Source: Orbicella franksi (taxonomy: Eukaryota). Taken from it: DNA of 64,000 bases. Positions 1-28,600 of this stretch are shown here, piece after piece. Within the stretch, counting starts at the first letter, position 1; every line of letters begins with the position of its first letter. The stretch spans positions 15,190,001-15,254,000 of the forward strand of contig OZ116704.1 in assembly GCA_964199315.1 (NCBI GenBank), given 5' to 3'. A program made the translations under genes and the position numbers. The notes beneath the pieces are model-generated. The model worked only from the letters and a program-made list of their open reading frames with translations, did not search any database and had not been told where the DNA came from.

Positions 1-2110
1 GCGCGTCGGGTATGTTATGGACGGGTCAATGGGTGAGTGAGTGAGTGAGTGAGTGAGTGAGTGAGTGAGTGAGTGAGTGAGTGAGTGAGTGAGTGAGTGA
101 GTGAGAGATGTATGTATGTCACACCAATCAGATTGGATCTACTATGAAGAGCCAATCAAATTTCTTGTTGTAAAGGGAAATGGTATGTGAGAAACTGACA
201 AGGTGTGTATAAACACAAGGACTATGGTAATTGAAAAATAAAGAGTGACGTGTATGTTACCGGTTTGCGATTTTCAGTCCGGTTTGGAGGGAAGTGTGAC
301 AGTTAGATACCTACATTGGGTTGTTTTATAGTGCATAATTTTCAGTGTAATGGTGGCTAGTTATGAACGAGATGAGTCTTGAGTTTTGAAGCAGTTCATG
401 AGTTAGTAGTAGGCAAATGGCACGAGATATTTTTATTTTTGATTACAAAGGGTAACTTGATACTTTTGTTTTCCACAAGGAGTTAATTCAATTAGAGGTC
501 ACGAATCGTCGGTTCTAGTTCTTAGGACATGTTTTAGAGGAGACGAGACTATTTAGATTTGAAGCATTTCTAACGTTTACAATAGTAAGTGCAGGTAACG
601 ATTGTTTTGTTCGTATTGCATGCAAATGTAACGAGATATTTTTATTTTTTAGTTACAATGGGTAATTTGACACTCTTGTTTTTCACAAGGTAGTAAATTC
701 AATTAGAGCTGACGAATCGTCACCACTTGTTCCCACGAGATGTTTGCTATTTTTAGTTACAAATGGTAACTCGACAATTCTGTTTTTCATATGGAAGTAA
801 ATTCAATTAAAGCTTACAAGTTATCAGCTATTGTTCCCAAGATATTAAACAAAATAGAAGCTTTCATTTCTAGAGTGTTTTTACGTCTCTGCAGTAGCAG
901 TTTAATAGTTTTATTTGATGATATTCATTTTAGTCCGATATTTTTTAAGGTAAAAAGTATGAAAACTGTTCAAACGTTCTTTGTAGACTGCGTGGCGTCA
1001 AGTTAAAGTGCATTTAATTAAATCAGACTTTCAACGTGTCAGAGAGGTTTTTTTCTTTCTTTCTATTTTTGAGTTATTTTTTTTGTAAAAACGATACCTC
1101 TTAGTCGGCGCGTCGGGTATGTTATGGACGGGTCAATGGATGAGTGAGTGAGTGAGTGAGTGAGTGAGTGAGTGAGTGAGTGAGTGAGTGAGAGATGTAT
1201 GTATGTCACACCAATCAGATTGGATCTACTGTAAACAGCCAATCAAATTTCTTGTTGTAAAGGTAAACGGTATGTGAGAAGATTTGATCCCGATGCAGTT
1301 TAGAACGGCCATATTTATTCTTCTATAAAAGAGGAGGAAGTATTCATATATTGGGTTTACTTCGACATTTTCTGTGGGTTAGGCTGAGGATTTTAGTTAA
1401 ATGAACGAGATGAGCCTTCGGTTCGTGAGTTAGAAGTATGCAAATGCAACGAGATATTTTTATTTTTAGTTACAAAGGTAACTTGATGCTTTTGTTTTTC
1501 ACAAGGAGTAAATTCAATTAGAGGTCACGAATCGTCGCTTTTAGTTCTTAGGACATATTTTAGAGGAGACGAGACTATTTAGATTTGAAACAGTTCTAAC
1601 GTTTACAATAGTAAGTGCAGGTGACGATTGTTTTGTTCTTGTTGCGTGCAAATACGAGATATTTTTATTTTTTAGTTACAAAGTGTAATTTGACACTCTT
1701 GTTTTTCACAAGAGAGTAAATTCAATTAGAGCTGACGAATCGTCACCGCTCTTTCCCATGAGATGTTTGCTATCTTTAGTAACAAATGGTAACTTAACAC
1801 GTTTGTTTTTTATATGGGAGTAAATTCAATTAGAGCTGACAAGTTATCGGCTATCGTTCCCAGGATATTAAACAAAAAAAAGCTTTCATTTCTGGACGGT
1901 TTTTACGTCTCTGCAGTAGCAGTTTATTTTTATTTGATGGGCATTTTATGACATTCTCTTCAGTCCGATATTTTTAAAGGTAAAAAGTATCAAAACTCTC
2001 AAATGTTCTTTGAAGGCTGCCTGGCACCAAGTTAAAGTGCAATTTAATTAAATCAGACTTTCAATGTGTCAGAGAGGTTTTTTTTTCTCTTTCTTTCTAT
2101 TTTCGGTGAC
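1..2110. repeat. Tandem duplication of a ~1.1-kb composite unit ((GTGA)n microsatellite plus ~100-200-bp internal subrepeats); a diverged third head at ~2210-2350
   Basis: gcgcgtcgggtatgttatggacgggtcaatgg+(gtga)n occurs at 1 and 1108 (period 1107). Subrepeat aacgagatattttt...aattcaattagag...acgaatcgtc recurs at ~421, 630, 745, 1448, 1654, 1760. Confidence 0.9.
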
Positions 2111-2366
2111 GTAGTGTTGTGTAAAAAGGTAAACTTACGACTCGTATAAAATGCGAAAAGGTCTCTTAACTTGAGTATTTTTGAGCAAAAATTCCTCTTG
2201 GGGGTTGGAAGGGCTATGTGATGGGTGAGTGAGGGAGTTATGCGTGTGCACGTGTCACACCAATCACAGTGTGGGTTTTATCAAAGATCGAATCAAAGAA
2301 GAGAAAAAGATGGTATCTACACTAATCTGGAGACGTGTCAGATTACTGTAGTTTGTTCAAACATTT

Positions 2367-2518
2367 TAGCGGAGCTCCGGCGGCCCGAAGGGCCGCCAAG
2401 CGGAGCCCCATACTCATATGGGAAAGAAAAGGAAACCCATGAGTTGATTTTCTCATGGTTATCATGGCTAGCGGTATTGCTCGTGGGCGCGTACGCACGA
2501 CGACGACGACGACGACGA

Positions 2519-2574
<56 letters not shown>

Positions 2575-3110
2575 GAGTTGCCCAACATGGCGGCCATACT
2601 CCAAATAATAGGTTGACAGGGACATGCAGCCTTGGTTTACCGTGTACTTCCTTGATATTGGACATCCATGTTATGATCAATTGACACCTGTCAATACAAG
2701 GTATCCGCTGACCAGTATCACGTGACCATATCGCGGGCTCAGGTTTACAGCTCCTCGAGGTCACGTGTTTTCTTGAAGTTGACCGCTGACCAAGCGCTGG
2801 CGATTGGATCGCGGGCTCATATTGGGTTAGCTTGTTGGAAACAGGGCAGGATTGCTCGGAAGCCAGTTTACGCTAACCCAGGATTAAAAGTTAATCGAAT
2901 TATAACTTTTTCTTCTATACAAATGTGTTTTGCTGTTTTGTTTTGTGTATATGGTGATTATTAAAACTCAAAACAGAAGGCCAAACAATATACAGAAACC
3001 TCACCGCAAAGTTACAAAACTCAAATCAAAATTCTACCTTTTCTGGGTTAGCTTAATCGGGCTTTGAACAACCCGGCCCAGGAGCTACGCTTTTAGGCTG
3101 GCCTAAATCT
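2367..3110 (+). mobile_element. Non-autonomous Helentron-like element (HINE/DINE-1 architecture) with (CGA)n/(CGGCGA)n microsatellite
   Basis: 5' subTIR agcggagctc, hairpin gcggccc-gaa-gggccgc, microsatellite 2497-2575, 3' subTIR gagctacgct, terminal hairpin tttaggc-tg-gcctaaa, T-rich flanks. Homologous copies at 42029-43022 and 24182-24360 (-). The class assignment is inferred from architecture. Confidence 0.7.
2845..3078. mobile_element. PIF/Harbinger-like MITE nested in the HINE
   Basis: Imperfect ~35-bp TIRs (ggcaggattgctcggaagcc...gctaacccag / ctgggttagc...gctttgaacaacccggcc) flanked by a CAG direct repeat (2842-2844 and 3079-3081). Confidence 0.75.
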
Positions 3111-3331
3111 ATATATTATGGCTTACTATTTAGCTATCTTACCATTACCGATGTAACATCGTATGTACATCATAAATTCCCAGTTTCATTCTTGCTGTAC
3201 ATCGCAACCAAAAAAAACTTGTCAGATTTACCAAATCATTACTGTAAACAGCTCCATGAATGCTCCTATCTCCGGCACTTCACAAAAAAAAATAACTCCT
3301 GCACGCCTTGCGTGCCTATGTTTTATTTTAG

Positions 3332-4884
3332 AAATTACACGGGGTAAGAATATACCTCATTCCAATCCTTCGCAAAAATTACGGCTTGTTGTCGTTATTT
3401 AAAATCTCGAACTGGAAGTTATTCAGCCGTGACCTAAAACCTTCTGGAATGTTCTATTTCTCCTGTAATGTTCAAATTTAGAAACCTTGCAACAACGCTA
3501 TTTAATAGCCCTTTTCACGGTTAATTTTTCTCATTTACATTACAATGTAATCCAACGTGGATGCAAGGCAATTTCGGGCTAAAACTACAAAATAGCCCGA
3601 AATTCCCTCACATACATGCTAGGTTTTATTGTAATGCAAATGAGCAAAGGTAACCGTGAAAAGGGCTATTCTTTAGATAAGTTTCTGGAAATTCCGGGTG
3701 TGCTTGTATAAGAGCGTGACTTTTGTCCATAAGAGAGCAATGAGAAATGTAATGAAGTTTAGCGCTGCTGAGTGCTGTAATCCGAGAAGTTAAATAAACC
3801 AGTTTGTTACTGTTACCGACGATCCCTTCGGCAGCATTTCGTATCATTTGGGTAAACTAGTTCCTAGGCCTCAATATTTCGCCGCGGTCATTCGTTTCGG
3901 GTCATGTGGTCCGGGGCGAAACGTGTACTCCGGGCCGTTCGTCTGGGATACGAAATATCAATAGACTGCGAAGGCCTGGGAGAAAGCCGTACAGGAACTA
4001 GGCAACCCAACACTCTGTAGGATGAAGGTTCCCCTCCGCTGGCTGGGTACTTCCTTATATGGGCTATATAGGTATGTGCGGCCTCAAAGGGTATGGTTTA
4101 TTAGCCGTTTTCGTCAGAAATAGCGTATCGATTTTGGCCATTTTGGTCTCAAATGAGGACAGGTTTTCTGAGGTCTAGTCTTGAATTAGGTGCTTTTAAG
4201 GAGCTATCCTACCTAGCATTTAAACGTATAAGGCAGGTCTGAAACACGGAATTCAATAACGGGTCAGGTCTTACATAAGGTATTGGAAAATCGCAAATTT
4301 TGGTCTTATATAAGGTAAAGCTTTGGGGAAGTGGGCCCCACACCCCCACCCATTTTTTCTGGGAGTACGTCTCCGGACCCCCTTCATGAATCTGTGTATG
4401 TGCTAAGGGAAAACATAACTTGCTGTTGATAGCATTTGAACTGGCAGCTAAGGCTTTTTTGAAACACCTTTCTTGTCAATCAAATGGACTTTTTTTAATA
4501 CAAAACAAATTCATTGATCACTTGGAATATTTCACATTTTATTGTCATGTTTAGACCTGACAATGAGCATGGAACTTCAGGAAAATCACAACATACAAAG
4601 AAATGGGAAAACCGTTCAATATTAAAATTCATATATCTAATTTTTCCAAAAACGTACGAAAACAAATGAGGATAATTTACATGTTGAATAATTTACACGA
4701 AAGTTGTTAAAAGCACCACGCACTGCAAATTACTTTGGTTATTTTAGGAAGCAGGTTTGTCTGCTGGAATCTTAAAATTGCTCAAGCTGCCACTTTTGGC
4801 AGCCATGTTGCTAAGGCTCATGGTGTACCCATGGCAACAAGATCGTCATGCTACATTCACATTGCTCCAGAGGCTTCAGATTGA
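3332..4884 (+). CDS. Candidate last three coding exons of an unidentified gene (3332-3343, 3623-3649, 4748-4884)
   Basis: All have AG acceptors, the first two have GT donors (gtaaga, gtaacc), and all junctions are phase 1. Spliced peptide ...ITRGFIVMQMSKGSRFVCWNLKIAQAATFGSHVAKAHGVPMATRSSCYIHIAPEASD followed by TGA TAA TAA; AATAAA at 5173. No family recognised. Confidence 0.4.
3858..4000. mobile_element. Short MITE
   Basis: Termini tagttcct...aggaacta with inner aggcct/aggcct; TA at both ends. Confidence 0.55.
4041..4380. mobile_element. MITE-like repeat family with gggtactccc...gggagtaccc-type termini (related copies ~8990-9396 and ~52420-52745)
   Basis: Shared blocks (atataggtatgtgcggc, ttttctgggagtac, tactcccagaaaaattgggtggg) and G-rich/C-rich inverted ends. 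Confidence 0.55.
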
Positions 4885-5385
4885 TAATAAGCATGAAAAA
4901 TATTCGTTTTCCGTTCAACAGAATTTAACCAAACCTCCTGTTTCCTCTTGCGTGTCAAGACAATAATCTACAAACAATGTACCAGTAACTATATTGTCAA
5001 TAACTTACGGTAGTGAAGATGAACAGCATGGCTGACATTTGTCATGCATTAATTTAGTTTTTTCCAAAAATTTGGACGATGCTAATGCCTGGTCACAGCT
5101 CAACTTTCCTCAACAAGCGAGCTTCATTTCAAGACTCTCAATTTACTGTTAATGATAATTCAAACTCTCTTCAATAAATATTAGACTTTTGGGTTTCGGG
5201 TTAACATGCTGGTTAAGTTTTACTTTTCAGTGCCAATTTTGTGTTTAAATGTTCCCCAAATGACCTGACATGCAAAAGCAATCCATCAAATGAAAACGAA
5301 AGCTGTTAAACAAACTAATGTAAGTTAACATTAGTTATGACATTTCTGTTGGCAGATAACAATACTTTTTTACATGTCGTCAAGT

Positions 5386-8300
5386 TTAAAATGGTTTAAA
5401 ATCTCCAAATGTGGTCGCATCTGAGACTGGGGCATGCATGTCCTCTCTTATAGCGCTCCGATCTCGGATTTTTGCAACAAGGAGAGAATGCTCCACCTAC
5501 AATAAACAACAAAAAACAATGATAATAATAAACATGTATTGTTCGTTGCTTGCAAGGCGGCAATGCTGACTCTCAGCTCAGCCTAGTAGGTGAGCTAGAA
5601 ACTTGTCATTACATCACAAATTTCAGCTTGGGCTGAAAATGTTTCTCCTTGCAGCTGCCATTTTATGTGATTAATAACATGCGATTTTGCTTTGTAGGCC
5701 CAAGTTCTTTTTTCTGCCTTGGTGAAATTAAGTTTGTTTATTTGGCTTTTTGGGGCTTTGTAAGACTGTTTGACTAGGCTGAAATTTCCCGGTCAGTTTT
5801 TCAAACCATTGAAATTCTCTATGGTAAGTGATCACCCCTTTATCACTCTCTTAAGCCTCTCAAGGCTGAACTGCTGATACAGGCAGTCAGTATTTAGGTC
5901 ATCACCCAGCAGAAGTGATGTGGATTTACAGCGGCATGAAATATGTCCTCGGCTGTAACTCACTCTCTTTAATCAAACCATATTAAAAACAAAACAAAAT
6001 GACATACAGGGTGCAGCTGTTACATCCCTAAACAAAGTTTAAAGCTATGTGACTCTCATTCCCAGGTTCACTCTTCTTTCAATCTCCAGGGGTCAGGAAG
6101 AAGAGAGAGCCTGGGGACAAGGTTGAACTATGTAATATAAAAAGCACTAAACATACCACTCCAATACGGACTTCCATTTGCTGGACCTCCTGTTTAAGTC
6201 TTGTCAAAGCTTGTTTTATTCTGACTAAAGGGCCTACATCAAGACAAGTAAGATGACTGAAAATTTTCTTTCATTTAGTTCATGATTTTCTATACTCCTA
6301 TAGCCTTACAGCATGACAAAGAATTGATGATATAAGATGAATTTAGATTTAGCTTCATGGAAAGGGCATGTGTTTTGCTGGGCAATGATATATTAAACTG
6401 TTGTCATGAATTGGCTATTCCTACTATAAACCAATTTCACAAGCTTTTGAGTCCTGGTGAAGTGCTTTTCTGTTACTCTAGGTAAAGGCAAGGTAAAGTC
6501 TGCATACAAGCCAAGTGACCCATCAGGCCAGCGATTATCCTGGTTTCTGTAGCATGAAACGACTAAGAGTATCTCTACTCCCCTGCTGGATAGGATGCCA
6601 GGACTTCCATCACAGGGTTAACCCCAACATCAAATTCAGCAGTACTCATTTATACACCTGGGTGGAGAGAGGTACTTTGACAGTTAAGTGTCTTGCCCAA
6701 GAACACAACTCAATGTCTCTGGCCAGGGCTTGAACCCAGACCCCTCAATCCAGAGTAGAGTGCGCTAACCATGAGGCCACCGTACCTCCCTTTCCTGTGG
6801 CCTTAAGCCGTGGCTATTTGGAAACTGCACCTGTTTCACAAAATCTTACCTGCATCAGTCATGTTAGTGCCTCGCTCATCCATCTGAGCTTTGACAGATT
6901 CTAGTTCTTCTGTGATCTGTGAATGAAATCATGTAGGTACCTTAAGCCTTTTTCTACACTGTCATAACTCATAGAGCTTGCTTGTTACTCAAATCCATTC
7001 AAACTAAACACACCTGAGATAATGACTTTGTAAGCTCAGTAACTCCCCCTGATCCTTGTTTGTAGCGCTCTTTTGTCTGTTGAGAAAATCAAATACAACA
7101 CTGTTAAAACTTAATGTTTCTGTTGTATCAGGGACAAGGGTATTGACAGAGAAACAGTATAATAACAATGCCAAGAATGCAAGGATTTCCACAGATTATT
7201 ATCAGATTTTTCTTTGAGCTTTTTAAAACAGGGGTGGGCTGGGGTGGGAGTGAACATGAAAAAAATATATTCCATCACCATCAAATACGTTCAAAGAAAA
7301 TAAAAGCATCATACCTCAGCCAAATTGTCCTGTAAACTTCGAAATTCTTGCAGCAAATGTTCAAGCTGTTAAAGAAAGCAGCAAAGTAGGAAACAGATCA
7401 AACTCTCCACTTTGCAAGAGAGAATGCCTTGTCAAAAGTATCCATGGCTACACTCATATTACTAACAATAATTTCATCATCACTAGATTTATCTGCACAT
7501 TTAAGGTTTCAAACATGTCAATCAAACTTCTACATGTACTTGTCTCATTGAAAAGAGTTTCATCAGAATTTTGCATGGTACGCAAAATGAAGAGAACTTA
7601 ATCTGAAATTAAGTTATAACATCTCTCAGACTCTCGCGTTGGATGTGCAACCGAAAAAAGGATGGCCGATCATAGGGTTTAAAAAGAAAAAGTATCTGAA
7701 GATCAATGGTTAATAACACTTTGTTCATAATACCTGGTTATTAATGTACTTTTCTCGACTGGATATTTTCTCCAGTGTTCTGCTGATCTCATGGTGAAGT
7801 TTGTCAAGATGGCCCTGAAAAGTACAAACAAAAGTAAGCATTGTAACTCTCCCAGGGCTGAACATCACCAGATTGTGCTGAATCAGCATTGCATGAATGA
7901 CCTGATGGGGGCATGGAACACTTAAGCCATTGGTAAAGCATTCATGACTGGCCCATTACCCACAAGGGGACTATGGTAAAAAGTGAAATGGAAAGCATTT
8001 ATGAGCATGCTCATGTATATTGTAGAAGAGTGATTTCAAATGTCTTATTACATGTAATTACATAACTTACCCTTGTTTCTGTTAAAGATGACTTGATTCC
8101 TTCACTATGCTGTTGCATTTGCTCGTAATGGGTCCTCCAGTCCTACAAGTATACAGTGTTTGTCAATCAACTTATCCTACACTACAGTAGACACACTAAC
8201 ACTGCCAGACAAACCTAATGGTGTATTACTGGCAATAACCAGGGGTTTCACTAACCTTTTCAGCAGGGGGCAAACTAGTTTTTCACAGGCAGGCAAAACA

Positions 8301-13927: not shown

Positions 13928-15318
13928 ATGGCGGACGTTTCAATGCAAAAAGTGAAAGATTTGATGGCAAAGAAAGATGCAATTGAACAGGAAATCAAGG
14001 AGTTTCAAGACGTTCTTGAATCTGTAAGCTCTATCTACGAACAACTAGATATTTAGATTCAGATAAATGACTATAGAAGTAACTTTAAAACTTTATTTTT
14101 TTTCAGCAAAAAGGAGTCGGGATGCATGGAAAGTTGATCGACGATGAGAATTATCCCCGCTCAGATATCGATGTTTACGCGGTTCGTGTTGCAAGAAATC
14201 GAATTATATGTAAGAAAGATAATATTCTGTTTCAAATTTCATGGTGTTATATTTTTTGAAGGCAAGAGGCGAATTTTTTTAAATAGTATTTGGCTCATGG
14301 TGATAACAATATGCGCGTGGGCTTAATTTGCTGACTCATTCTTATGCTGTCCTACATCCTTTCGAATGTTAAATCAGGTCTTCAAAATGACCATAAGGCG
14401 TTAATGAAGGAAATAGAGGAAGGCATTCATGAGGTGCATGCCAGAGCACGAGAACAGAAAAATAATGCAAAGGAAAACCAGGAGGATACAGAAATGGCAG
14501 GTAAAGCTGCGAAGGTGGTTTAGTAATCGATTAAGTCTCTGGATGTTCAAACATTGTTATTGTTCAAAGTAGGTAAAGAGCATTACTTGTGGTTAAATCG
14601 GTATTTTCTCCAAAATGCCAATTTGAAAAAAGGTACAAAAGTCAGTTTTGATATTCGCTGCGTCTCTAATTTGTCCAGCAGCTGGACAGGTTTTTCAAAA
14701 TACTCCATGTCCGGCAGTCAAAATTATTTTTTAAAAATTCATTTAATAATATCAAATCCTTGTTTATATGGCTGAATACTTCACTATTTCCACCATAGTG
14801 TGAAATTTGGTGAGCTGGCACCCTACACCAGTATTTATAACATAGACTATTATAAAATAATTGGCAGTCAAAACGTTTAAATAGTACTCTGGTTAGCCTA
14901 AAAATCACTCTGGTTAGCCTGAATAGCACTTGGGTAGCCTGTTTATGGTTAGCTTTCAATAATGCTAAGAGTAACTCTATAAATATTTAAAAAATTCTGA
15001 GCACTGCTGGCTGGTTGCCATGGCGCAGTGGTCATGGGTACTGCTTGCCATACCAGCGACCCGGGTTTGATTCCTCTTGGGGTTGCCTGTCATAAAGTTC
15101 TTTTTACGTTGCTTTAATTTATAAAAGTCTCACAGCCAGACACGGAGTATTTTAAAAAACCTGCCCAGCTGTCGGACATGTAGCCACAGTGTTTGATATT
15201 TCAAAGAAATAAATTCAGTAAACTTTTTTCTTAAATATGCCCAATTCCCTCACATAAATTATGGTAAGACTAATATCTTTTCTTTGAGACTTTGTTAACT
15301 TGCTCAAAAAGTCAAGAC

Positions 15319-15376
<58 letters not shown>

Positions 15377-18300
15377 GAATATTTATACAGGATAGCCCTT
15401 CAGTGCAAGAGTACTGTTATCAAAGGGGTCCTGTCTAAATAACATAATATAACAATAGAAACTAAAATAAGTTAAGAATGACTTTGTAAATTATTGTGAC
15501 GAACGAATGCGTGACATTATTTGTCATTGCAAAATCACCACGCTGTTGTAATAGGATCTCCGGGAGAGGTCTGAGTCGGAGAATTGAGAAGAGAATTAAA
15601 AAGACACCTGTGTATTTACGTGAAGGATCTGTCCTTTATTGCAGCCCGTTACATTATTAACTACACAACATAAAATTGATCTAAAGACTCCCTAAATAGT
15701 ACCCTAATGCTAATTTGCTTGATTTTTAAAGGTAAAGAATTAAAAGCTGAAGTGCCTAAAAAGTAAAAACTTTTTCGAGCGAAGTCAAGTTTCACTTTTG
15801 GCAGAGCAATGGTGGTCCCACTGTTCCTCGTATTAAAATCGTGGGTTAAAAAATTAAAATAACCCTAAACCCTAAAACTCTAAAATCAAGTAGAGATGGC
15901 AAGACTAGGAAATTTCTCTAAAATTCTGTAGGATGTATATTTTTTAAAGGACCAATTGCCATGTCAATCATTAAAATTCTACAAATCACAGATCAAATGG
16001 AGTTTAGGAACCACTAGCATAGTGATATTAGTAGAGTGGTTTTACTACTGGAATTGTACATGCCACAACTTCATATTAGTTCCTATTATCCGGGTATAGT
16101 TAGTAATTCTTTTGTTTTCTAATCTTTTTCTAATCTGTTTTTGTATACTACGCAGTAATACTAATTAGCAGACAATATTACACACTAACAAGTAGTTTCT
16201 GTTTCATCACTCTATGTTGGCCAAACAAAATCCATAATATTCTTGTTTGTAATACACTCACATGTTTGTGGTTTCCAGATATTTCAACAAAGCTGGAAGC
16301 TTTTCTTCGAGTTGATTCAGTTGCTGAAGGGTCACCGTCATCACAAGCAGTAAGAAACAATGTTTAATTGTTTCCATTAAGGGGCATTTCAATGTAATCA
16401 GGGATTAACAGCACATGAAATTGTTGTTGTCTTGAAGTAAGATTATTTTACCACACACCCATATTTATCACAATATGGACAGATTAGGTTAACAACCATT
16501 TGTCGCTTGTTAAATAAATACACAAGGAAACCACACAAAACATTTGGCAGTAAATGGGACTAAGGTTGTTGGGTGCTCCCTGGGATAAATAGGGTGGAAG
16601 CAATACACCCTGTAAAGTGAAGGTAAAGGGGGTGGCAGCAGCACACCCTACGAGTAATGGATGAGCCAACAATTGTAGTGCATGCTACACCTGGTGATAA
16701 CATGTAAACTAAAAGGGATGAGCCAATAAGTGTGGCACATGCCACACCTGGCTAGTGACTAAGGCTAAGGTGGGGTCAGGGTCTCACCCAGCCTGCTATG
16801 TGCAAAGAATATGGACAGATTAGGTTAAATCTGCATACAAGCAAAATGGCCCATTGGGCTGGCGCTTATCTCCGGTTTCAGTGACTTGTAGGAACTAGGA
16901 GTATTTCTACTCCCCCCTGGATGGTATGCTGGTTACCCCCAGCATTAAATTTGCTGGTACTCATTTAAACACCTGCATGGAGAGAGGCACTGTGAGTAAA
17001 CTGTCTTGCCCAAGAACACAACACAATGTCCCCGACCAGGACTTGAATCTGGACCACTCGATCTGGAGGCAAGCACACTAACCACAAGGCAACCTCCCCT
17101 CTGCAATATGCATAGATTACAATGAATTAACCTTTCCACAGTCATACTTCTTCATGATTCAATTATAGGGTTTAAAAGTTGGGGATCTCATCATAAAATT
17201 TGGCTCCATCAGTGGTGAGAACTTCAACAGCCTTCAGGATATTGCTTCTGTTGTACAGCACAGCAAGGGGGTAATGATAATAATTAATTAAAAATTTAAT
17301 TTCTCGATTATTCAGATTATTTTTACCAGTCCAAACATGTCTAATGATAAGGCTGAATAGTATTCACCAACTGTACAGCATTGTTTGTTTTGTTTCACAT
17401 GGTTTTCCAGTGTTGAATATTTGCAATAGTCAACTAGACAATCAGTACTCTTTACTTTTTTGAGAGTTAAGAGTTCTTGGAGAGGGGTGGGGGAGGGTGG
17501 GGGAAATGGGGGTAAAGTGTTCATCAGTTAATTTTGGCTCATATTTTAGCTTACCAGTTTGCATGTGATAATCTCTTCTACAGACCCCAATGAGTGTTAC
17601 AGTTGAAAGACAACAGAGAACACAAACCTTATCCCTTACCCCAAACACGTGGGGTGGACGAGGGCTTCTTGGGTAAGAATCCAGACTCCTGTTGGTATTT
17701 TCATTTGAAATGTAAATTACCAGTATGTTACAGGCAACTCTCTACGAACAGACACTCTCATAAGCGGACAGCTCTATTTACAGACACTTTTTTCAATTCC
17801 CGTTTTACCTTCCAGTCAAACTCTGTATTTGCACATCCCCATAAATGAACACTCTCTCGTAAGCAGACACGGACACTTTTGAAATGAAAATTGGATTTTT
17901 CTTTTATTTACTCTCTCCTAAGCAGATGCCCCATGTATTTAACAATTAACTCTTGGCAATAAATTGACAAAAATATGACCTTAAACAGAGAAACAGAAAA
18001 GTGGGATCAGTTTTGTCAAATCTACATTTGTTAACGGGAAAGCAAGCTGTCCGTTTGTTTGACATCAACAACAGTCTGACATAACATTTGTAAAGTCATG
18101 TCATGGCCACATTCATCATGGTCTACTGTCCTTCTCGCTTCTGTTTTCAATCACTGACTGTACTGAATACAGTATACTGTATCCCAGATAACACCCACTG
18201 ATTAACTCTCCCGTAGGCAGACATCCACACTATTTTTCTTTGGTGTCCACTTAAATGCAAATACTTCTTGCAAGTGAACAGCCATATATTACTAACAGAC

Positions 18301-18462
18301 ACTTTTTCCAGTTCCCAAGGGAGTCTGCTTAGGAGAGAGATGACTTAATTCTACTAGTATGGTCACTTCTGAAATGAATAGTCTGTTACAGTGTCATCCA
18401 GTGCTAAACATTCTTGATTACTCTACTTTGTCTACAGCTGCCACATTGTTCCTGTGAAATAG
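13928..18462 (+). CDS. PSMD9: 26S proteasome assembly chaperone p27/Nas2 (202 aa, 7 exons)
   Basis: Exons 13928-14023, 14107-14209, 14378-14500, 16279-16349, 17169-17270, 17584-17672, 18438-18462 (609 nt, phases consistent). Motifs [29 protein letters not shown] ([14 protein letters not shown]), C-terminal [13 protein letters not shown]. Confidence 0.96.
15010..15090 (+). mobile_element. tRNA-like SINE head fragment
   Basis: A-box-like tggcgcagtgg and B-box-like gggtttgattcc about 35 bp apart; no full cloverleaf. Confidence 0.45.
15320..15850 (-). mobile_element. 3' end of a CR1/L2-type LINE with (TTA)n tail
   Basis: Minus frame reads [43 protein letters not shown] (typical CR1/L2 ORF2 C-terminus), then a 3'UTR and a (tta)n tail at 15320-15374. 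Confidence 0.8.
16493..16807. mobile_element. 315-bp insertion flanked by a perfect 21-bp direct repeat
   Basis: aatatggacagattaggttaa at 16472-16492 and 16808-16828; internal duplicated motif ggatgagccaa...atgc(t/c)acacctgg. Confidence 0.6.
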
Positions 18463-18823
18463 GCATCTTTGACCATCATTTGCTGAAAAAGCAGCATCAA
18501 CAAAGAAACCTCCCTCCTCTGTCTGCAGTCAAGACAAAGTTTACAGACATTTTAAATCAAGCTGTGTAAACCTCTTTAGCAAAATTATCATTTAGGGCAA
18601 TTAGAATTATAGTTCTAATCCCTGTTCAGGGTGTATGGTGTTCCCAGAGGTAAATAACTTGGCTCATCTCGCAACTGGAAACCATTTGGGCACACCAAAT
18701 GCACTATCCCTGACAAAGACAGGGTCTGTTTGAGTTTACTGGTAGTTGTTTTTTTGGAAAGACTTACTCCATCACACCTTAAACTAAGTGAGCTTGGTTC
18801 TCAGTTTTCCACATGTTTCTTTG

Positions 18824-18961
18824 CAGTGGCAGATCTAGGAGAGGGGCCTGGGGGGGGGGGGGGGGGCAAAAAACCCAAAAAAATCGCAGAAGGAAGAAAA
18901 GCCAGCAGGGCACGCAAAAATAACCACACCCCCGTTAGCTCGAGGTCTGGATCCGCCACTG
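18824..18961. mobile_element. MITE with 5-bp TSD (hAT5-like)
   Basis: TIR cagtggcagatctag / ctggatccgccactg; flanks ctttg/ctttg. Second copy 55740-55896 has catat/catat. Confidence 0.8.
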
Positions 18962-19142
18962 CTTTGCGGACATTTTTTACTTTTTGCCACACTGGTCTCA
19001 AATTTAAAATTGTCAACAATTTCAATACTTATTGAGAAAATATAAAGATTTCTTTAATAATGTGCAGTATTAGCTCATCAAACAAGATGACAGGACTGTA
19101 CGGTATTAAAATACCTTACTACATTACTTACAAACCACTTAA

Positions 19143-21201
19143 GGTATTCCTGGAGGCTAAAGTGACATTTTTGTTTTGCCAAAATTTTTTGTCCGCTGGA
19201 AGATAATTTTAAAACACAAACGTATGCTAAGTTTTAGGTCGGAAAAACCAAACCCGTCTGAGATATTGGCATGCGAAGTTTCGTTTCTATGTAGGTTTTC
19301 GCGGTAAAAATACGAAAAAATGTCCTGCTGTGGTCTCCCAAAGGATGGTCTTGTTGACAGCTCAACGCAATAAAACCTGGTAATTCGAAATGTGACACCC
19401 TCTTTGATCGTGATGGCAGCCGAGGAAGCGGTAAATGCGCTCGACCGTACTTTCAGAAAATAAAATAGGCATTGAACTCGCGGACAAAAGAAATAATGCT
19501 TGACGTCGTGGCCACAAACAGTCCTTCTGGGATACGGATTCTAAAAGATAAAAGCAATTGTAAGTAACAGCGCTTTGGCAGAGTCATTGTAATTACAGTA
19601 AACAAAAGCGCACTGGAAAATCATCGGTCAAGGTTAGCTAATGTTTTCACATAAAATTTGTAGCTACACAAGCTAACAAAACATGAATCAAAAATTTCAC
19701 TGGGAAGCACCAAGGGGAAGTGAAATAAACGTATGTTATGGACGCTTATGTAATGAGAATGTATTCATTGCTCACAGATCACATATCATAGAAACGTGAG
19801 AAAATCTCAATGCTAGACAAGACAACTAATCGAGCCATCAATCTTCAATGAAAAAAGTTATGAAATTGAGACGGTTTGTTGTAAGCTACAAATCAAGATA
19901 CAAGCAGGAGTCTCACCATTCCCTATTGCTTTCCTCACGAAGTTCCTTTAGCGGTGGTTCGTAGTCAGAGTCATCGTGGGGAGAATCGGTCGTTGATTTC
20001 TGCTCTTGTTTGGCGTTGACAATGGTTTTAGTTGTTTGAAAGGTCTCCAAGACCCCTTCATCTCTCAGTTGCCGTTCTACATCTTTCGCACTTTTTAGTG
20101 TCTTTACACCAGGGTTTGTGTAGCGTAGGTAGACCTTAACTCCCGAGGACGACTCCCTCTCCTCCTGTTTTATCGTCCAGCCAGCTTCCCTCAACTTATC
20201 AAAATCCAACGCAATTCTTGATTGTGTTCCAGAACCACGAATCGCATTACCCTTCACCGCCTTCGCCGCTTTCTCGCTAGTTTCTCTCTGTCGCTTTTTC
20301 GGCGGCATCACTCCGACTACTTCTTTTTTTCTTTCGTTTTTTTTTTCGCTAAATTCTCTCGCGCGTCCTATCTTTCGCTCGCTTCGAATGTCAATTCTCG
20401 CAATCACGCTGTCAACACTAACAGTTGGATGCCGTTGCGGGTACCGTTGCTATGGAAAGGTGTTATTGTTCGTAATCGCTTTTTCCGATTGGTTTCGCGG
20501 GAAAAATAGCACCCCGTAAAAGGAAAAAAGGGCCCAAAACAGGGCCGTTTTAGGCGATATACCGCTGGAAACTATTATTGTAGGCATTTACAAGATGGCT
20601 GCCGAGGAAAACAACGAAGGGAGAGCTTTCCGACTGGTAATTTTCGAATTAAAGCTCGATCTTGTGTCTAAATAAATGGTATAAATAAATGTGGGAGATT
20701 GTTCATTTCATTTTCTTTTCATAGGTTAATCGCTACGACTTAAAACTTGGCAGACAAAAACTACGTATGTGAACGGACTTTTTTGTGCGAGTACGTCAAA
20801 TGCCTTTGAATACAAGACTCGTAGAAGCATTGCCATTTTTATAAGGGTGTGAAAACATATTTCTAGACATTATTTTTTCCCGTTTTCCTTTTCTCTGACG
20901 TACTCGCACGGAATTTTAGTTTTCAACCTCGTGCATAAATTGGCCAAACCTTTCTAACATTGAAGGAATATTCTTTGAGTTATTTTGCAATAATCAAAAC
21001 AAGAGGGTTTCGACCACGCCCATTTAAATATCAAATTTCAGGGACTACTTTCATTCTGGCTGAAGAAAATTATTTTTTAAAGTAAATACATAGAACAACG
21101 TTTTAGATGTAAAAATTTTATCATTTTTGAGCCAATATTTTTAATGATTTGATGCATGCAAATATGGTAGAAAAATATGCAAATTAGCCTCCAGGAATAC
21201 C
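19143..21201. mobile_element. Kolobok-like DNA transposon (internally deleted) carrying divergent ORFs
   Basis: Perfect 18-bp TIR ggtattcctggaggctaa / ttagcctccaggaatacc and TTAA TSD (19139-19142, 21202-21205). RR...YY termini with a TTAA TSD are the Kolobok signature. CpG-rich interior; no DDE catalytic core seen. Confidence 0.8.
19913..20308 (-). CDS. Transposon-borne 131-aa ORF: N-terminal NLS plus MBD-fold-like domain and acidic tail
   Basis: MPPKKRQR (NLS-like); AGWTIKQEERESSSGVKVYLRYTNPGVKTLKSAKDVERQL follows the MBD pattern GW-x-R-xSG-x-Y-xxP-x-K-x-(R/K)S-x-L. The stop overlaps a TG|GTGAGA donor, so it may be exon 1 of a longer gene. Confidence 0.6.
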   Translation of the reverse strand: MPPKKRQRETSEKAAKAVKGNAIRGSGTQSRIALDFDKLREAGWTIKQEERESSSGVKVYLRYTNPGVKTLKSAKDVERQLRDEGVLETFQTTKTIVNAKQEQKSTTDSPHDDSDYEPPLKELREESNREW

Positions 21202-22669
21202 TTAAGACTACTAATATACAGTATGTACAGAAAATAACATCTGAAATGCAATTAAAATGCGAGCGACTTTCATTTCACACACAGCTTTAGCATCATTGCC
21301 TGAATTACATAAGGATAATAACTGGATGGCTACCCTAGGGTTACTCTTCGTATGCAAGTCTTGACCTTGCTCATGTTAAAACCAACTGAAAATCTTACTC
21401 TGAAAGGATGAATTCCACTGCACAAATGATATACCTTTAACATATGAGCTTAAAAGTTCATTTCTCAAATTTGGGCCATTCCTTTTTTCCTGTTTACTTT
21501 ATATTTAACCAGGGGTTTCAATAATGTTTTCAACAGGAGGACAACTGGTTTTCATAGGCAGACAAAACTTTTTGAATTGAACTTTTTATAAGGAAAACAT
21601 TCCTCTGTATGGTCAAACTAGGCAGGCAAAACTATCCTGTCAGCCTGCCAATTTGCCCAATGTCTGGCCCTTAATGAAGTCCCTTAATTAGCTTGCTGTT
21701 TTCTGACTTTTATATCGTAAACTATCTTTTTGAGGGTGACATGGCCAATTAATACAAGAGGCCTAAATAATCTTAGAGGTCTTGTTATTATGTAATGGTA
21801 TTTAGTAAGCTGTTATAGTTATAGTAGAATTGAAACCCCAGAAATTGGCAGTACCATATGCTACAGTTGGCTAGCAGTAGAACAGTAAAATATCGGGGAA
21901 AGCATTTAATGTTTACAAGTTATAAATAAAATAACTCAAAAAGCAGACTGCTTTTCTGCCAATTTGGTTGCTTCAAACATCAGCAAAATGCCGAAAGACT
22001 GGAGACAAGTATCACATGTACATTCTACTTCCTTCAGACTACTGGTAATCCTATTTTAAATTAAATACCTGTCTGTTTAAGTATAGCATACTTTTCCAAA
22101 ATAAATATTATATTTAACATGCAAGCAAAGCCTGCTGTAGAAACAAGAGTTCATCACTGGCACTAATGAACCAATAACTGTGGAACAGAATTAACTGATC
22201 TTAGCACTGACTGTTTGTCATAAGCACCTTGCATTCAAATACATCAATATTCAAATATGTTATGTTCCTACAAACTGGGTCAAGTAATAAATGTCCTGGA
22301 AATCAAAGGTTCAGTCACTTTAATTTGCTTTTCATTACTATAAAATTAAAAGTAACTCAGCTGAATTTTGGCCTCTTAGAGGAGTCCATACGTTTACTAT
22401 ATACACTTTGCTAAAATGTTCAATTAGGTGCATCTTTGCTTTTCAGTAGGTAACATAGTTGAGATGTTGTTCTGCGTGGCACAGGGCATGCATGAATAAA
22501 TGCTTTTCTGCTTTCTCTACTTCCTCCCATGCTGCTTCATACCGTCACTTCCACAGCTAAAAGCTCTGCAAGTAATTAGACAAGCTTGAAGAGGCCTCCA
22601 TGGAAGCTAGCCAATGCTAGGTAACGGACAGGATATTATTGAAAGCACTGGCAGTGGACCACTGATAGG

Positions 22670-25600
22670 TCAGCTAAGGTTTGTGTTTTGTATTACTGAG
22701 TGAAGAATTTCAAGTCCATGCATTTCCTTCAGCTTGTCAAGATGCCTGCAAAATGAATAACATGTGCGTAAGGCTCCATTATACTAAATGGGTAATACAC
22801 ATAATTATTCTGTACAAAAGCTTTGTCTTAGTTGCATCAATACCATAGAAAATTATCTCCTGGTCTTTACTTTTTGTAACAGCACCATGCTGCGTCAATG
22901 AATGCTTAAAATCCTTAAAGTGTAAAGGTCTATGTATCTTTTGTAAATGTTTACAAGTTTGAACAAAAATTATTGGAATTACACTTGACTGCCTAATTCC
23001 TATTATATTTGACATTTTTCATTTCTATTTGTTTGGTTTGAAAAATATGTTGATGTATGTTCTTGTTTTGATGTCAAAGCCTGACTAGTCCCAGGTCCTA
23101 ACCCCACACAGTTTCTGACCCAACCAGAAGTGAAATTTCACATTTGCAGAGAGCTAAAATGTAATGAAAAATATTTCCACATCACGATCTCATGTAGATT
23201 CCATTGAGCCAATGAAAAAATATTTGTCATATACACTTTAACAGAGAAGCAGTGATTATGCGTTGTATTGCAATACCTTTTGTCTGCTGTGGCAAGTTTA
23301 GCTAAACAAATGGCAGCATTTTGTTTTACGTCATTGCTCAACTCATCATCTGTTGCATGCTTCAGGAGAATTTCCACTACCTCGCCAACACCAGCAAGAT
23401 ACTGGCTAACTTCCTCTGTGAAATAAAAGTCATTTACCAGGCTGATAAATTACTTGTAACTTATGGGAACAATGTTCTCCTGCAATAACACAATAATTAA
23501 TTTGCCATTGCTGACATGTAGCACTGTCCTCATCAAGGTAGTGTTCCCAACTGGTTCAATTGACCTAGCCCATCAGACACAACTTAGATCTGTATAGTGT
23601 TACGTCATTTCAGCATCAACTGTAATCTTGAATCCTAGACTGACTCCCAGGCCTCTCCTAATGACATGTAACACTATCCTCATAAACAGAGCGTCCCTGA
23701 CTGGTTCAATTGACCTAGCCCATCAGACACAACTTAGATCTGTATATGTTACATCATCTCGGCATCAACTGTAATCTTGAATCCTAGACTGACCCTTGGC
23801 CTCTCCAAGAGGGCCACAAGGATCTCACAATGGCTTAACTGTGTTGTCTGGGCAACTGAGGGCAAATACACCTTACAGCTGAATCTATCACTTTGTCCTT
23901 CTGAGAACAAATTTTGTATCTAAATCTGAGTATGTCTTGAAGTTTAAAATATGCTACTGGAATTCTGCATATTAATCTGATTTAACAGCCCATTAGTAAA
24001 GGAATTTTGAAGCAGTTGAGAGTCCTCTTACTTACCCATATCAGCACAGTGACCAAGGCATAGTGATGTATTTCCTATGATGGTTTCATCTGTAGAGTGC
24101 AGAAGTTGCACTAAAAAGTCCAAAGCTAAAACAGGAGAGTTGAACACCTTAGTTCAACCTTGCCATACACTAATTTATGCTGATTTAGCCAAAACCTGAA
24201 AGCTGAGATCCTGATTACAGTACGTTAACCTGGCTTGAGCTTGCCATCCAATGGAAAATCAGTACTGGGCAAAGGTCAACTTAAATAAAAAAGCTCTAAA
24301 CCTGAGCCTGCAATATGGTCATGTGATACTGGTCAGTGAATATCTTGTTTTGACAGGTCCACTATTACTACATGGTAGGCATTAGGGACCAGTGAAATTG
24401 TATCTTACATTTTCTTACATGTACCTAGTATGTGTATGCGTGTACCTTTCTCACTTAAGACAGCTTCTCTGGCATCTTTTCTCTCCATTGTGCACAGTGC
24501 CAGTGACTTGATGGCATATTTCTTCACAGTTTCCCTTGTGCTTGCCCCCCATCCCACCTGAAAATGGCTGCTAAGAATAACCAACTGCAGAAGGAATAAA
24601 CACAACATTGGCTTATAAACAGCTACCAAGATGCACAAACATTAACAAAACAACATCTGTGAGCCAGTTCACCTCTTGAGTGCCAGACCATTGTGTATGC
24701 TCTGTGCCACACCATTTTCACCGAAAATGGGTGTCTAGTAAAAAAGTTCACAGAGCTTTTTCACCTAATCAAAAGATATGTGCATATTTTCTGAACTTAG
24801 GTCATAGATTAAAGTGCTCCTTCAAAGTGGTTAATTTAACTGAGGTTGATGCATACTGTAATTTGATATCCATTTGATGTCATGAACAACAATGGGAAAT
24901 TAGCAGTCTCTCGAAAAACCTCCTATGAATCTCAGGAGCTGATAAAAGTTTTTCTAGTGTGCCAGGAGTTAAACTAAATCTCTTGAAATTTTGACATACT
25001 CAGTACATCATATAGGCACCTGAGGAGCAAAAACCATGATGCACATGTACTGAGTAAGGCATATAGGCACTCAGGGGTTAATATTTATTAAGCATATTCA
25101 AATGTAAGCATAACAGCAGGATGGTATGAGAAATGTTTCAAATAGCAATAATTTAGAACCCCATGCTTATGAGACTATCTGAGCAAAATGGTCACCATAT
25201 GATGCAGCTCTCGATCATGGTCAAAGCCAATCTACTGACCATTAGATCAAGACAAATTCCTGTACTGACGTAACAGAAAGCAAACATTCCAGCATGTAAC
25301 ATGTCACCTTAAGAATGCGCAAAACGTGGATGTGGATTTTCTGATCACAAGCTTGATTTAATGCATCGGTTGAGTGAGCCAGTAGATGTCTAATCGTAGC
25401 AAGACTGCGCTAAAACGTTAAACAGAAGTAATGAGTTAGACAGGATTATCCTGAACAAACTTCCTGTATTTGTCACCGATAAGGTTCACTTTCAACGGAC
25501 ATCACAAAAAAAAAAAAAAAAACAGCATCCAGTATCACAGGGCTTAGTTGACAAAATTATTGATAAGTCTGCATTGGTTCAATTGCAGCCATGCTGGAAA

Positions 25601-28600
25601 TGACTGACATTCCTCATAGCAAGATAAACGACATGAAGGTGTAACCATTAGCAGACGCTGGCACAAAGGCACAATTTCAGGCCTGAATCAACTACTCTAC
25701 ATCTAGACTGGTGCCCCCATGACACCGAGAAAACCAAGCAATGCTATAATGCAGTTTGTAATTTAATGGGTAATGACCAGGTTAAATCTAAGAATAGAAT
25801 ATATTGTACCTCACAGATTTCATCATATCCTGTGTTTAACATCTCAATGAGTGATGGAATCAACCTTGGAGCTGCATCCTGATTGACAAGAATTCCCAAA
25901 ATACTTTTTGTGAGTATACCAGTGTCAGTGGCTGTTTATTATTGAGACATGCTCAGTTAAAAGAGTTTCTTTTCATATATATAGTAACATTGGAATGTGC
26001 TGACTTCTATACTATTTCTGTCACTACTTACATATAACATACCTTCTGGTGTTGGTTTGGTTGTGTGGATATATTTGCTAGCAAACCAAGAAGAGAAAAG
26101 ATGGAACATCGTACTTTCTGGTCTTTTATACCACAGATATGGCAATCCTGTGTAAAAATATAATTTACATGTTAATTAAAAACAAGGCCACACTTAAAGA
26201 AAAGAAGCACAGATTGAACTGAGAATCCTGTAAGGTTGGGAGGGAATGAAAAGATTGTCATTGGTGACTGACATTTTACGCAATACATAAATTTTCACAA
26301 TCAGGTTCAAGAATCTGTTACTTTTTTAAAATTTTGGTCAGGGTTTGTTACATTTTTTTGTTACATTTCGTGTGAAACAAATTTGTTGCTATAAAGAATT
26401 GTTCATAACTAAGTTACAGGTACCACTTGTTAGAATAGTAAAAAAGTCTGCATACAAGCCAAGTGGCCCATCAGGTCAGAGCTTATCTCGGTTTCTGTAA
26501 CATGAAGTGACTAGGAATTTTTCTACTCCCCCCTGGATGGGATGCGAGTCAATCACAAGGTTATGCTCAGTAATAGAAAAGGTTAAGGTAGAAAGGTAAA
26601 CTCTGCATACGAGCCAAGTGGCCTATCGGGCTGAAGCTTATCCTGGTTTCTGCAGCATGAACCGACTAGGGCTACCTCTACCCCCCCTGGATGCGATGCT
26701 AGTCCTTTGCAGGGTTACCCCCCAGCATTAAATTTGCCTGTAACCATTTATATACACTTGGCTGGAGAGAGACACTGTGAGAGTCAAGTGCCTTGCCCAA
26801 GAACACAACAAAATGTCCTCCATCAGGGCTCAAACCTGGACTGCTTGATCCAGAAATGAGCACACTAACCATGAGGCCACCATGCCTCCCACACTTGGGA
26901 GTAGAAAAGTAAAGTAAATAGTGAAGTACAAACCAGGAACTTGACACTAGTTTCCCACCATGCCTGTTCATCTGCAATCTTATTTCTTATGTAAGTGTCC
27001 CTGGCCATGTTAGCCAAAGCTGATAAACCAGATGACACCAGAGACCAGTTATCTGTAGGTTCGTGAGATGTTTTTTGGTTGCCTTCGCATAACTTTAACT
27101 GTACATGAAAGGACAATGAAAGAACAATGACAGTGTCAATGAGCGTAATCATGAAGACAGGGAGGGAGGAAGAGAAGCTGAAGGACACAATGGACAATAG
27201 ATGTATGGACAAAGGACGAGAAGGAGCAGAGATGAACCTTTACAGATAAAAGGGTGCAAGGAGAAAGGAAGATCAAGAAAATAAGAGAAAGAAGGGAATC
27301 CACTTTACCACAAATTTCTGTGAGATGCCCAGAAAGTCCTTGTCAACCAGATCTCTAATTTTTTCACAGAATCTAAAAAGGAGAATTAGAGAGAAGAGAG
27401 AATTAGTTCTAAAATAATTTACCATCCTTTGGTTTATGATTGTTTAACATGTACTTTTCCCGTTTGTTTTTACTGACCTGTAAATTCATTCTGATCAGAT
27501 TATAAATTTAAGTTCAAAGTTCAGAATGAAAAAAGTTATACTCTTAACAATACCTTGTAAGGCTGAGAAATAACATGTTACAAGTAACTTGTCTCTAGAC
27601 ATAGCTTTACCAGAGCATATAACACATTTGACAGCTTTCATACCCTTGTTCCAAGGCTAAGTTATTAATTGTGGACATTGCCACAACAGCTGTATTGTTT
27701 CCCCTTTGTACAAGTGAAAATAAGGCTTCTGTTACCCTGAAAAAATAAAACATACATTCCTTAATCTCAACTCATTGATATCCACCCTTTAATGACTTTT
27801 TGTTTATCCTCACAGTCTGCAAGGTTTCATTTCATTTTCTTCTTGTCCACTCTGTTCTTATCATTAGTTTAAACCCTATTCAGTCTTCTAGTTGACAATA
27901 TTCTTTCATTACTCCCATCTGCTTGTTTCCTAATCTTACCATTTGATATGTTTATATGTAGTAAGACCAAGTCTTCCCTTTTCAGTTTGTGACAGTTGAT
28001 GGAGGAAGGACGTAGCAGCAGTTCTAATGACAGGAGAAGTTGGGTCTCTTAAGAGAAGATTGAATGATGGGGAATGATCCTTCCTGAGAAACTCTTCCAC
28101 ATTGTGATCTGGAAGAAAAATATCTTGCCTGTCACAAACTAATCAACAGAAAACAACAAATTCAAAAAGCAGAGAGAATACATGTCTTGATTGATTTAGT
28201 AACTGACTGACTAACCAACTAACTGATTAACCAACTGACTGACTAACTGACTGACTCACTGACTCACTGACTCACTGACTCACTGACTCACTGACTCACT
28301 GACTGATTGACTGAGTGACTGACCAACTGACCGACTGACTGACCGACTATCTCACTGACGCACTGACTCACTGATGGATGGATGGACAGAGAGATGAAAG
28401 GATGGATGGACGGACAGACAGATGGATGTACTGACTGAATGATTGAATGACTGATGGACTGACTGAGCTTTTCTTTAACCACCAGGCATATACATTTCTT
28501 CTTTAACTACATGTACTTACTGTCACATACATAGATACAAACACTGGACCTTTATAGATTGTTCACTTCCGTTGCATTACGACCATCGCTGATTTAGTTT

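Follow-up and report, generated by a model that had tools for sequence, protein, structure and literature searches.

Terminal repeats and genomic copies of the element

The 64,000-nucleotide stretch of the Orbicella franksi genome analyzed here (contig OZ116704.1; hereafter, the window) holds a transposable element at positions 19143-21201, which contains an open reading frame (ORF) of 131 amino acids (aa) on the minus strand. The element is delimited by two terminal inverted repeats (TIRs), one at 19143-19160 (plus strand; the 3' end in the orientation of its gene) and the other at 21184-21201 (minus strand; the 5' end). Their 18-nt arms are 100% complementary to each other and have GG...CC as outer bases. 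Outside them lie the TTAA target-site duplications (TSDs), at 19139-19142 on the left and at 21202-21205 on the right, neither being assigned a strand. The perfect inverted match extends to 23 nt, in that the TTAA and one further base per side pair by coincidence. The arm pairing and the flanking TTAA bear out the sequence-only reading of this locus, an earlier annotation made from the letters alone, which had described perfect 18-bp TIRs with GG...CC ends and a TTAA duplication.

With up to two mismatches allowed, the genome contains the 22-nt pattern formed by the TTAA and the TIR 34 times, versus 0 times for the reversed control; 32 of these ends carry TTAA and two carry TCAA. Every copy examined has TTAA at both sides and unrelated DNA outside. 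Because there are 34 ends versus none in the control, and because TTAA-bounded copies lie in unrelated DNA, the inverted repeat is not a chance palindrome. Six short copies, including the one in the window, measure 2,059-2,062 bp, are distributed over five chromosomes, and are 98-100% identical when aligned end to end; the five other sites of the 2,059-bp form sit on four other chromosomes. Five further copies are longer (L031-L035, 4.9-8.2 kb); at these five loci, the first 315 bp of the element and its other 1,741 bp are separated by 3-6 kb. The sequence-only reading had raised the prospect that a genome-wide search with the TIRs and the ORF would find longer copies in which the 131-aa domain is fused to a transposase. 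Such longer copies exist (L031-L035), and in relatives the domain is indeed fused to a transposase core.

Altogether, the TIR family comprises approximately 20 insertions, six or seven of which lie within 2.0-8.6 Mb of contig C10 (L017, L031, L052, L004, L035, and L025). This cluster includes L031, one of the long copies whose core exon is open, and L052, a member of a sister subfamily. Such clustering would be expected if a cut-and-paste element hops locally or has a source region there. L052 (G000:C10:7171477-7178198) is a 6.7-kb element with an identical 18-bp TIR, whose core frame stays open for 430 aa. Compared with the window family, it has 77% identity in the core and only 44% in the N-terminal domain. 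In this genome, a single set of ends seems to serve two diverged transposase lineages.

A single deletion gave rise to the short copies

The short form corresponds to positions 1-1740 of the gene strand of L031 joined to positions 7547-7861, with three filler bases between the two parts. What is missing is the 5.8 kb of L031 gene-strand positions 1741-7546, which include the whole catalytic core. In the window, the deletion junction with its three filler bases lies at 19458-19460 (no strand assigned) and is common to all six short copies in their end-to-end alignment. The retained 3' subterminal region, i.e., the last 315 bp of the full-length element, lies at 19143-19457 on the minus strand and is 99.7% identical to L031 7547-7861. 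The deletion therefore runs from inside the second exon of the gene described below to 315 bp before the 3' end of the element.

Since all six short copies align end to end, they go back to one deletion event that was followed by transposition to new sites. For this spread of the short form, transposase was therefore needed in trans from full-length copies. The window copy itself is a dead-end deletion derivative without the catalytic core.

The 131-aa ORF as the first exon of a transposase gene

In the window copy, the 131-aa frame (minus strand) begins with the ATG at 20308 and closes with a stop at 19913-19915, which confirms the open frame beginning with MPPKKRQR that had been noted before; the mechanical ORF is 164 aa, as counted from an upstream GTG. 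The stop codon, TGA, falls within a splice donor, G/GTGAGA (a slash marks the exon boundary here and below), and the same tryptophan-stop pair ends most of the 50 aligned homologous exon-1 ORFs (22 displayed). Our model of the gene predicts a coding part of exon 1 at 19917-20308, an intron 1 at 19541-19916, and a truncated exon 2 at 19461-19540, all on the minus strand, so that the 131-aa ORF would be exon 1 read through into the intron as far as the stop at 19913-19915. The predicted intron has its donor at 19916 and its acceptor at 19541-19542 and is not conserved with L037, a 6,974-bp relative from another species.

Exon 2 follows a pyrimidine tract and the acceptor cttttag/. Where it is intact, it forms a 109-nt block between the exon-1 donor and the core exon, with the same acceptor, the donor AAG/GTAAAT, and the right phases. 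The block is conserved with L037 and the DNA around it is not; moreover, the exon-2 peptide aligns with an Orbicella gene model, P0073, at its residues 45-68 (E 2e-10). The exons were analyzed one at a time and junction frames were checked by local translation; the junctions are predictions.

Within exon 1, the basic stretch PPKKRQR (20285-20305, minus strand), which is N-terminal in close homologues as well, is by its composition a probable nuclear localization signal. It is followed by an R-G-x-G-x-x-S-R motif (20216-20239, minus strand) that is conserved in the family and predicted to be disordered, and then by a folded core of residues 31-94 (20027-20218, minus strand). Upstream of the ATG, the region at 20309-21183 (minus strand) would hold the 5' untranslated part and the presumed promoter. 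It is 68% conserved with L037 over its whole length, and the ratio of observed to expected CpG (o/e) reaches 1.58 at 20309-20700.

The long copies and their relatives show how the exon continues. On the strand of the 131-aa ORF, L031 carries an ORF of 494 aa, followed by one of 83 aa that has a CCHC-type zinc knuckle. P0058, an uninterrupted 760-aa ORF from a metagenome contig, aligns collinearly with the three L031 ORFs: its residues 1-69 match the 131-aa-type ORF, residues 159-618 the core ORF, and residues 656-758 the CCHC ORF. Other fused relatives with the domain at their N-terminus are P0168, P0092, and P0107 (profile E 2e-9 to 7e-7), and an Exaiptasia RefSeq gene model is among the fused proteins. 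P0076, a RefSeq gene model, is fused too; it was a row of the A1 profile and thus matches by construction. Because relatives hold the same three coding blocks in one 760-aa frame, we read the 131-aa ORF as exon 1 of the transposase gene and not as a separate captured gene. The captured, stand-alone reader ORF proposed in the sequence-only reading is therefore not what lies at the locus, given that its stop sits inside a GTGAG donor and that the relatives are fused in frame in one ORF.

In L037, no more than a single 94-nt block of the 3.4 kb downstream of the transposase is kept; the ORFs in these 3.4 kb gave no Pfam match that would point to a second, KolX-like gene.

The N-terminal domain resembles MBD and TAM domains

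The folded core of exon 1 was modeled with AlphaFold2 (AF2) on an alignment of 29 homologues. In this model, residues 31-94 have a predicted local distance difference test (pLDDT) score of 74-86, with strands at residues 45-53 and 56-64 and a helix at residues 74-84. Foldseek returned top matches that are nearly all MBD or TAM domains (BAZ2A/B TAM, SETDB2, MBD4, MBD2, and MeCP2; probability ~1, E 0.02). A VIA comparison with 48,161 representative chains placed SETDB2, MBD4, AtMBD6, BAZ2A, and MBD2 as the top five, with Z of 4.5-5.4. The structural matches have a root-mean-square deviation of 1.4-3.3 over 40-61 aligned residues, at 16-30% identity. When the profile of the 29 homologues was compared with the PDB, the top nine matches were MBD2/MBD3 (E 0.03-0.3, best 0.029) and covered the whole MBD core, and the BAZ2B TAM domain stood lower in the list (E 1.5). 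Language-model neighbours of the domain are MBD clusters, one of which also contains DUF7028. With the single ORF as query, a phmmer search of the PDB gave only chance-level MarR-type matches, and the window-copy ORF had no Pfam MBD row at E <= 10.

Across the 29 sequences, distant fused relatives included, G25 is invariant and G27, S30, and R31 are nearly so. The features conserved in the whole family are the R-G-x-G-x-x-S-R motif, a G-W pair, an N-P-x-G-K hairpin, and the helix. Taken together, the models and profiles make it very likely that the domain has the MBD/TAM fold. The earlier suggestion of an MBD-like fold hence stands insofar as the profile, the two fold searches, and the language-model neighbours agree; a match above the threshold of the Pfam MBD family (PF01429), with which it had proposed a comparison, was not obtained.

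The domain is conserved between subfamilies. In its core, the nonsynonymous divergence (pN) is 0.14-0.15 and the synonymous divergence (pS) 0.51-0.77 against two subfamilies, and the ratio of nonsynonymous to synonymous rates (dN/dS) is 0.19 where dS is unsaturated. The value among subfamilies, a check that the sequence-only reading had also named, is thus far below 1, indicating that the domain is under purifying selection between subfamilies. At the level of individual copies, each of the six short copies has an open exon 1, as do L031-L033, so that the loss of the ORF in other copies, which would have spoken against the earlier reading, is not seen there. Exon 1 is broken in L034 and was not recovered in L035, in which the start codon was not located. 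As for the core exon, it is intact as a frame in L031 and L032; a single stop interrupts it in L033, and eight do so in L035.

The transposase core and its superfamily

The 494-aa core ORF has 117 homologues, and all named ones are anthozoan (Montipora, Porites, Orbicella, Exaiptasia, Actinia, Actinostola, and Paramuricea). Its Pfam search gave no match at E <= 1, piggyBac transposase families included. Several fragments and relatives, among them fragments 76% identical to it, pass the threshold of PF20700, "Mutator-like transposase". In the part of the literature that we covered, we found nothing on PF20700 or DUF7028.

An alignment of 34 members of the core family, a part of the transposase that long copies have and the window copy lacks, shows a D-G-x-W-x-x-R-G-x-x-S-x-N block with D123, an N-W-Q-D-x-D-S-S block with D200/D202, a C-G-G-H-V-G-R-A-H block, C374-x-x-H377, and a G-H-S-N-x-x-E block with E409. 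D123, D200/D202, and E409 are invariant or nearly so, and C374-x-x-H377 is nearly invariant (31/31 sequences covering the site). The conserved CGGHVGRAH stretch and the later C-x-x-H would give the order H,H,C,H, a candidate counterpart of the H2CH putative zinc-finger motif of Kolobok. The AF2 model of the core has a mean pLDDT of 81, and its best structural matches are the ISCth4, Hermes, and P-element transposases.

Kolobok elements are defined by TTAA-specific duplications together with 5'-RR...YY-3' termini, which separate them from piggyBac, and the C/DxxH signature is common to Kolobok, MuDR, hAT, P, and Dada (PMC9587614). Both end features, TTAA and GG...CC, are found in the window element and also in L037. 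Three relatives, P0175, P0177, and P0178, are 36-40% identical to the core in a profile search (E ~1e-160) and carry a C-terminal DEDDh exonuclease (RNase_T). A transposase joined to a DEDDh exonuclease is the published architecture of KolobokD, which is present in molluscs, arthropods, and cnidarians. Altogether, membership in Kolobok, which the sequence-only reading had assigned from the ends, is well supported by the sequences, if not closed, now that the long copies are seen to encode a DDE transposase with C-x-x-H.

A THAP domain is usual in Kolobok transposases (PMC6004289). In the window family, there is no Pfam match to THAP in any long-copy ORF or full-length relative and no C2CH pattern in the six frames of L031. 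THAP does occur together with PF20700 in one atlas cluster of cnidarian relatives.

Homologous transposases of 900-1,130 aa (P0169-P0178) end in PHD fingers, an Ulp1-type protease, or the DEDDh exonuclease. Accessory domains, a histone-tail reader (PHD) among them, have been acquired more than once in this Kolobok clade.

CpG content of the element and its insertion sites

The CpG o/e of the element is 1.18, compared with 0.54 for the window and 0.21-0.38 for the 5-kb flanks, and lies at the level of the highest 2-kb tile of the window. Relative to this background, the CpG-rich interior described before holds. The 5-kb flanks are strongly CpG-depleted (0.38 at 14143-19142 and 0.21 at 21202-26201), against a median of 0.87 in 20 random 3-kb regions. 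These CpG-poor surroundings suggest that the element lies in DNA with a history of methylation, which may be a gene body; near the insertion, the flanking window DNA gave no identifiable exon.

For the family as a whole, we computed the CpG o/e of the 1.5-kb flanks at 32 ends. Their median is 0.57, compared with the 0.87 of the random regions (p = 0.10 by the Mann-Whitney test); ends that belong to a single insertion are non-independent, and the background is small.

Alternative explanations

It is very unlikely that the element belongs to a superfamily other than Kolobok, either piggyBac or a MuDR/Mutator-like one. piggyBac also makes TTAA duplications, the Pfam family matched by the relatives bears the name "Mutator-like transposase", and the best structural match of the core is ISCth4, an IS256-family transposase, IS256 being bacterial kin of MuDR. 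However, since the C/DxxH signature is common to both superfamilies, a Kolobok element should show a Mutator-like profile and fold, and the relatives with a DEDDh exonuclease fit the KolobokD lineage. In addition, MuDR elements make duplications of 8-10 bp, unlike the fixed TTAA found here. piggyBac was rejected as a candidate, since it has only the TTAA duplication in common with the element: the termini, GG...CC, are not of the piggyBac type, and the core ORF matches no piggyBac transposase family. An unlikely role for the short copies, within Kolobok, would be to make an N-terminal DNA-binding fragment that competes at the ends and damps transposition, in the manner of the KP repressor, a product of internally deleted Drosophila P elements. 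For such a role speak the open exon 1 of all six short copies and the retention of both ends and the promoter region. Furthermore, in the window copy and three siblings (L001-L004), the first base of exon 2 is A, which gives a predicted junction codon TG/A, a stop; predicted splicing would thus end their product exactly at the exon 1/2 junction, and read-through would give approximately the same 131 aa. Yet, an open frame of 393 nt needs no selection among copies that are 98-100% identical, and the short-copy ORF is probably intact because the copies are young and not because the copy was selected. The window copy also has a private change, G68V, at a hairpin glycine kept by almost the entire family, which resembles the onset of neutral decay.

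We also considered whether the domain is a working methylation reader that directs insertion to CpG-dense, methylated DNA or protects the element against silencing, which we regard as improbable. The MBD/TAM fold agrees with such a function, and a precedent exists in the arthropod CopiaMBD retrotransposons, in which a mobile-element protein with an MBD was shown to bind methylated CpG (PMC6673714). The CpG-depleted DNA around the window copy and the low median of the 32 flanks point the same way. As to the residues themselves, the methyl-CpG set consists of two arginine fingers, an aspartate, and a tyrosine, and the sequence-only reading had aligned the domain by eye to MeCP2 as keeping R111 and having Y, R, and K in place of D121, Y123, and R133. 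The MBD2 profile alignment reproduces this assignment exactly. In the window subfamily, the first arginine finger (the equivalent of MeCP2 R111 and MBD2 R166) is kept and the other three residues are replaced, but even this arginine is not kept in L052, the sister subfamily with an identical TIR in the same genome, and in distant fused relatives. The best Foldseek matches, moreover, are the TAM domains of BAZ2A/B, which bind nucleic acid independently of methylation. The flank difference is not significant and its ends are non-independent. Targeting to methylated DNA is not supported by these results. For the same family-level idea, namely that in an anthozoan Kolobok clade the MBD/TAM domain replaced THAP and senses the CpG or methylation state, the chances are likewise slim. 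If true, insertion might be biased to methylated gene bodies, or end binding might be coupled to methylation of the element's own CpG-rich ends, and no cut-and-paste transposon would have had a module for methylation-linked targeting or self-regulation described in it before. The domain most likely recognizes the element's own DNA and is probably not a methyl-CpG reader.

Cis motifs and neighboring features

The motif TTTCGCGG occurs at 20493-20500, approximately 190 bp upstream of the ATG, and at 19297-19304, approximately 160 bp from the 3' end. In its extended form, TTTCGCGG(G/T)AAAAATA, it spans 20493-20508 and 19297-19312 in one orientation and is E2F-site-like. In L037, the 3' occurrence is kept at an equal distance from the end, and the 5' one is kept too. 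In the 5' region, a perfect 14-nt inverted pair with TGACGTA, which is CRE-like, lies at 20785-20798 and 20896-20909 and is also kept in L037. TTTCGCGG and the TGACGTA pair are candidate cis elements.

On the plus strand, two similar ATGGC(A/T)GCCGAGGAA stretches lie at 19409-19433 and 20597-20645, with GGTAA(A/T)T shortly after each. This strand is the opposite of that of the transposase gene; the stretches may be promoter motifs of the initiator type or antisense first exons.

A search with the left flank for an empty paralogous site gave only an unrelated short repeat approximately 180 bp away, the immediate flank being unique. This segment, 18877-18962, belongs to a very abundant short repeat (85-145 bp) in the genome, with 714 first-look candidates at 74-89% identity, and overlaps a run that encodes poly-Gly/Lys in one frame.

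Discussion

Our results make it probable that the element at 19143-21201 is a non-autonomous derivative, shortened by an internal deletion, of a ~7-8 kb Kolobok cut-and-paste transposon that has been active recently. In the mechanism that we propose, one multi-exon gene of the full-length copies would encode the transposase. Its exon 1 would supply the basic stretch, the R-G-x-G-x-x-S-R motif, the MBD/TAM-fold domain, and, after these, an acidic linker. Next would come exon 2, which is small, then the DDE RNase-H-fold core, encoded by a large exon, and finally a C-terminal exon with the CCHC-type zinc knuckle. The single 5.8-kb deletion would have removed the catalytic core and left the ends, the promoter region, and exon 1 in place. 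The deleted form would then have spread to at least six sites by means of transposase supplied in trans, for which the two full-length copies with open core exons are possible sources, and the short copies would be able to move because they kept their ends. The MBD/TAM domain, together with the R-G-x-G arm, may serve as the DNA-binding module for the element's own terminal or subterminal DNA, in the place that THAP takes elsewhere. In this scheme the window element is an ordinary deletion copy, and the point of interest is the transposase architecture of its family.

Several points weigh against this interpretation. Beyond the two copies of TTTCGCGG, we found no repeated subterminal motif common to both ends. 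Each line of evidence for MBD/TAM is weak alone for so small a domain, and it is their agreement that counts. In the VIA comparison, dsRBD folds follow close behind the MBD/TAM chains (Z 4.0-4.5), with the best tying at 4.5. The L031 copy stays below the threshold of Pfam MBD (PF01429), with 14.1 bits versus a cutoff of 21 (E 0.037), and also below that of DUF7028, with 18.4 bits versus a cutoff of 27. The placement in the superfamily rests on the TSD, the termini, the signature motifs, and the KolobokD-like relatives. A second in-frame donor/acceptor pair, which skips exon 2, is also present in the gene. Lastly, the trend of the flanks toward low CpG, although not significant, would fit a methylation-linked preference.

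Transposases bind their own ends through a few recurring domains (THAP, BED, helix-turn-helix, and zinc fingers), a list that MBD/TAM would extend. If our interpretation is true, it would be the second independent use of the methylation-reading fold by a mobile element, after CopiaMBD. In the part of the literature that we covered, neither Kolobok nor other cut-and-paste transposases are described as having an MBD-type domain. Being young and having two open-core copies and a non-autonomous partner, the family offers a practical system in which to study what the fold may bind without the methyl-reading residues, and corals have gene-body methylation against which an insertion bias could be judged. 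For annotation, it follows from our gene model that the 131-aa ORFs called in many anthozoan assemblies would be first exons of transposases and not small host chromatin proteins.

Among known systems, Kolobok itself (Kol0 and Xenopus XKol) is alike in its TTAA duplication, 5'-RR...YY-3' termini, DDE transposase with C/DxxH, Cys/His-rich motifs, and non-autonomous derivatives (PMC9587614, PMC6004289). The window family differs in its MBD/TAM N-terminus, in that neither THAP nor a KolX-like gene was recognized, and in its gene being split by introns, whereas some relatives are intronless. KolobokD has a homologous core (P0175, P0177, and P0178), but the window family lacks the exonuclease and ends in the CCHC knuckle; the exonuclease-bearing relatives, in turn, gave no match to the MBD-like profile.

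With regard to the domain, the window family has the G-W pair, N-P-x-G-K, and the following helix in common with the BAZ2A/BAZ2B TAM domains and with the MBDs of SETDB2, MBD2-4, and MeCP2. Unlike these, its domain is without the second arginine finger, the aspartate, and the tyrosine, and it stands in the context of a transposase and not of a chromatin protein. CopiaMBD is likewise a mobile element with an MBD-type domain (PMC6673714). It is a long terminal repeat retrotransposon whose host-derived MBD passes the profile thresholds, whereas the window family is cut-and-paste, has a sub-threshold domain from which most methyl-reading residues are gone, and has no host donor identified. As for the short form, its closest parallel is found in the KP-type P elements, which are likewise internally deleted and keep the promoter and the N-terminal DNA-binding part, the domain of P being THAP.

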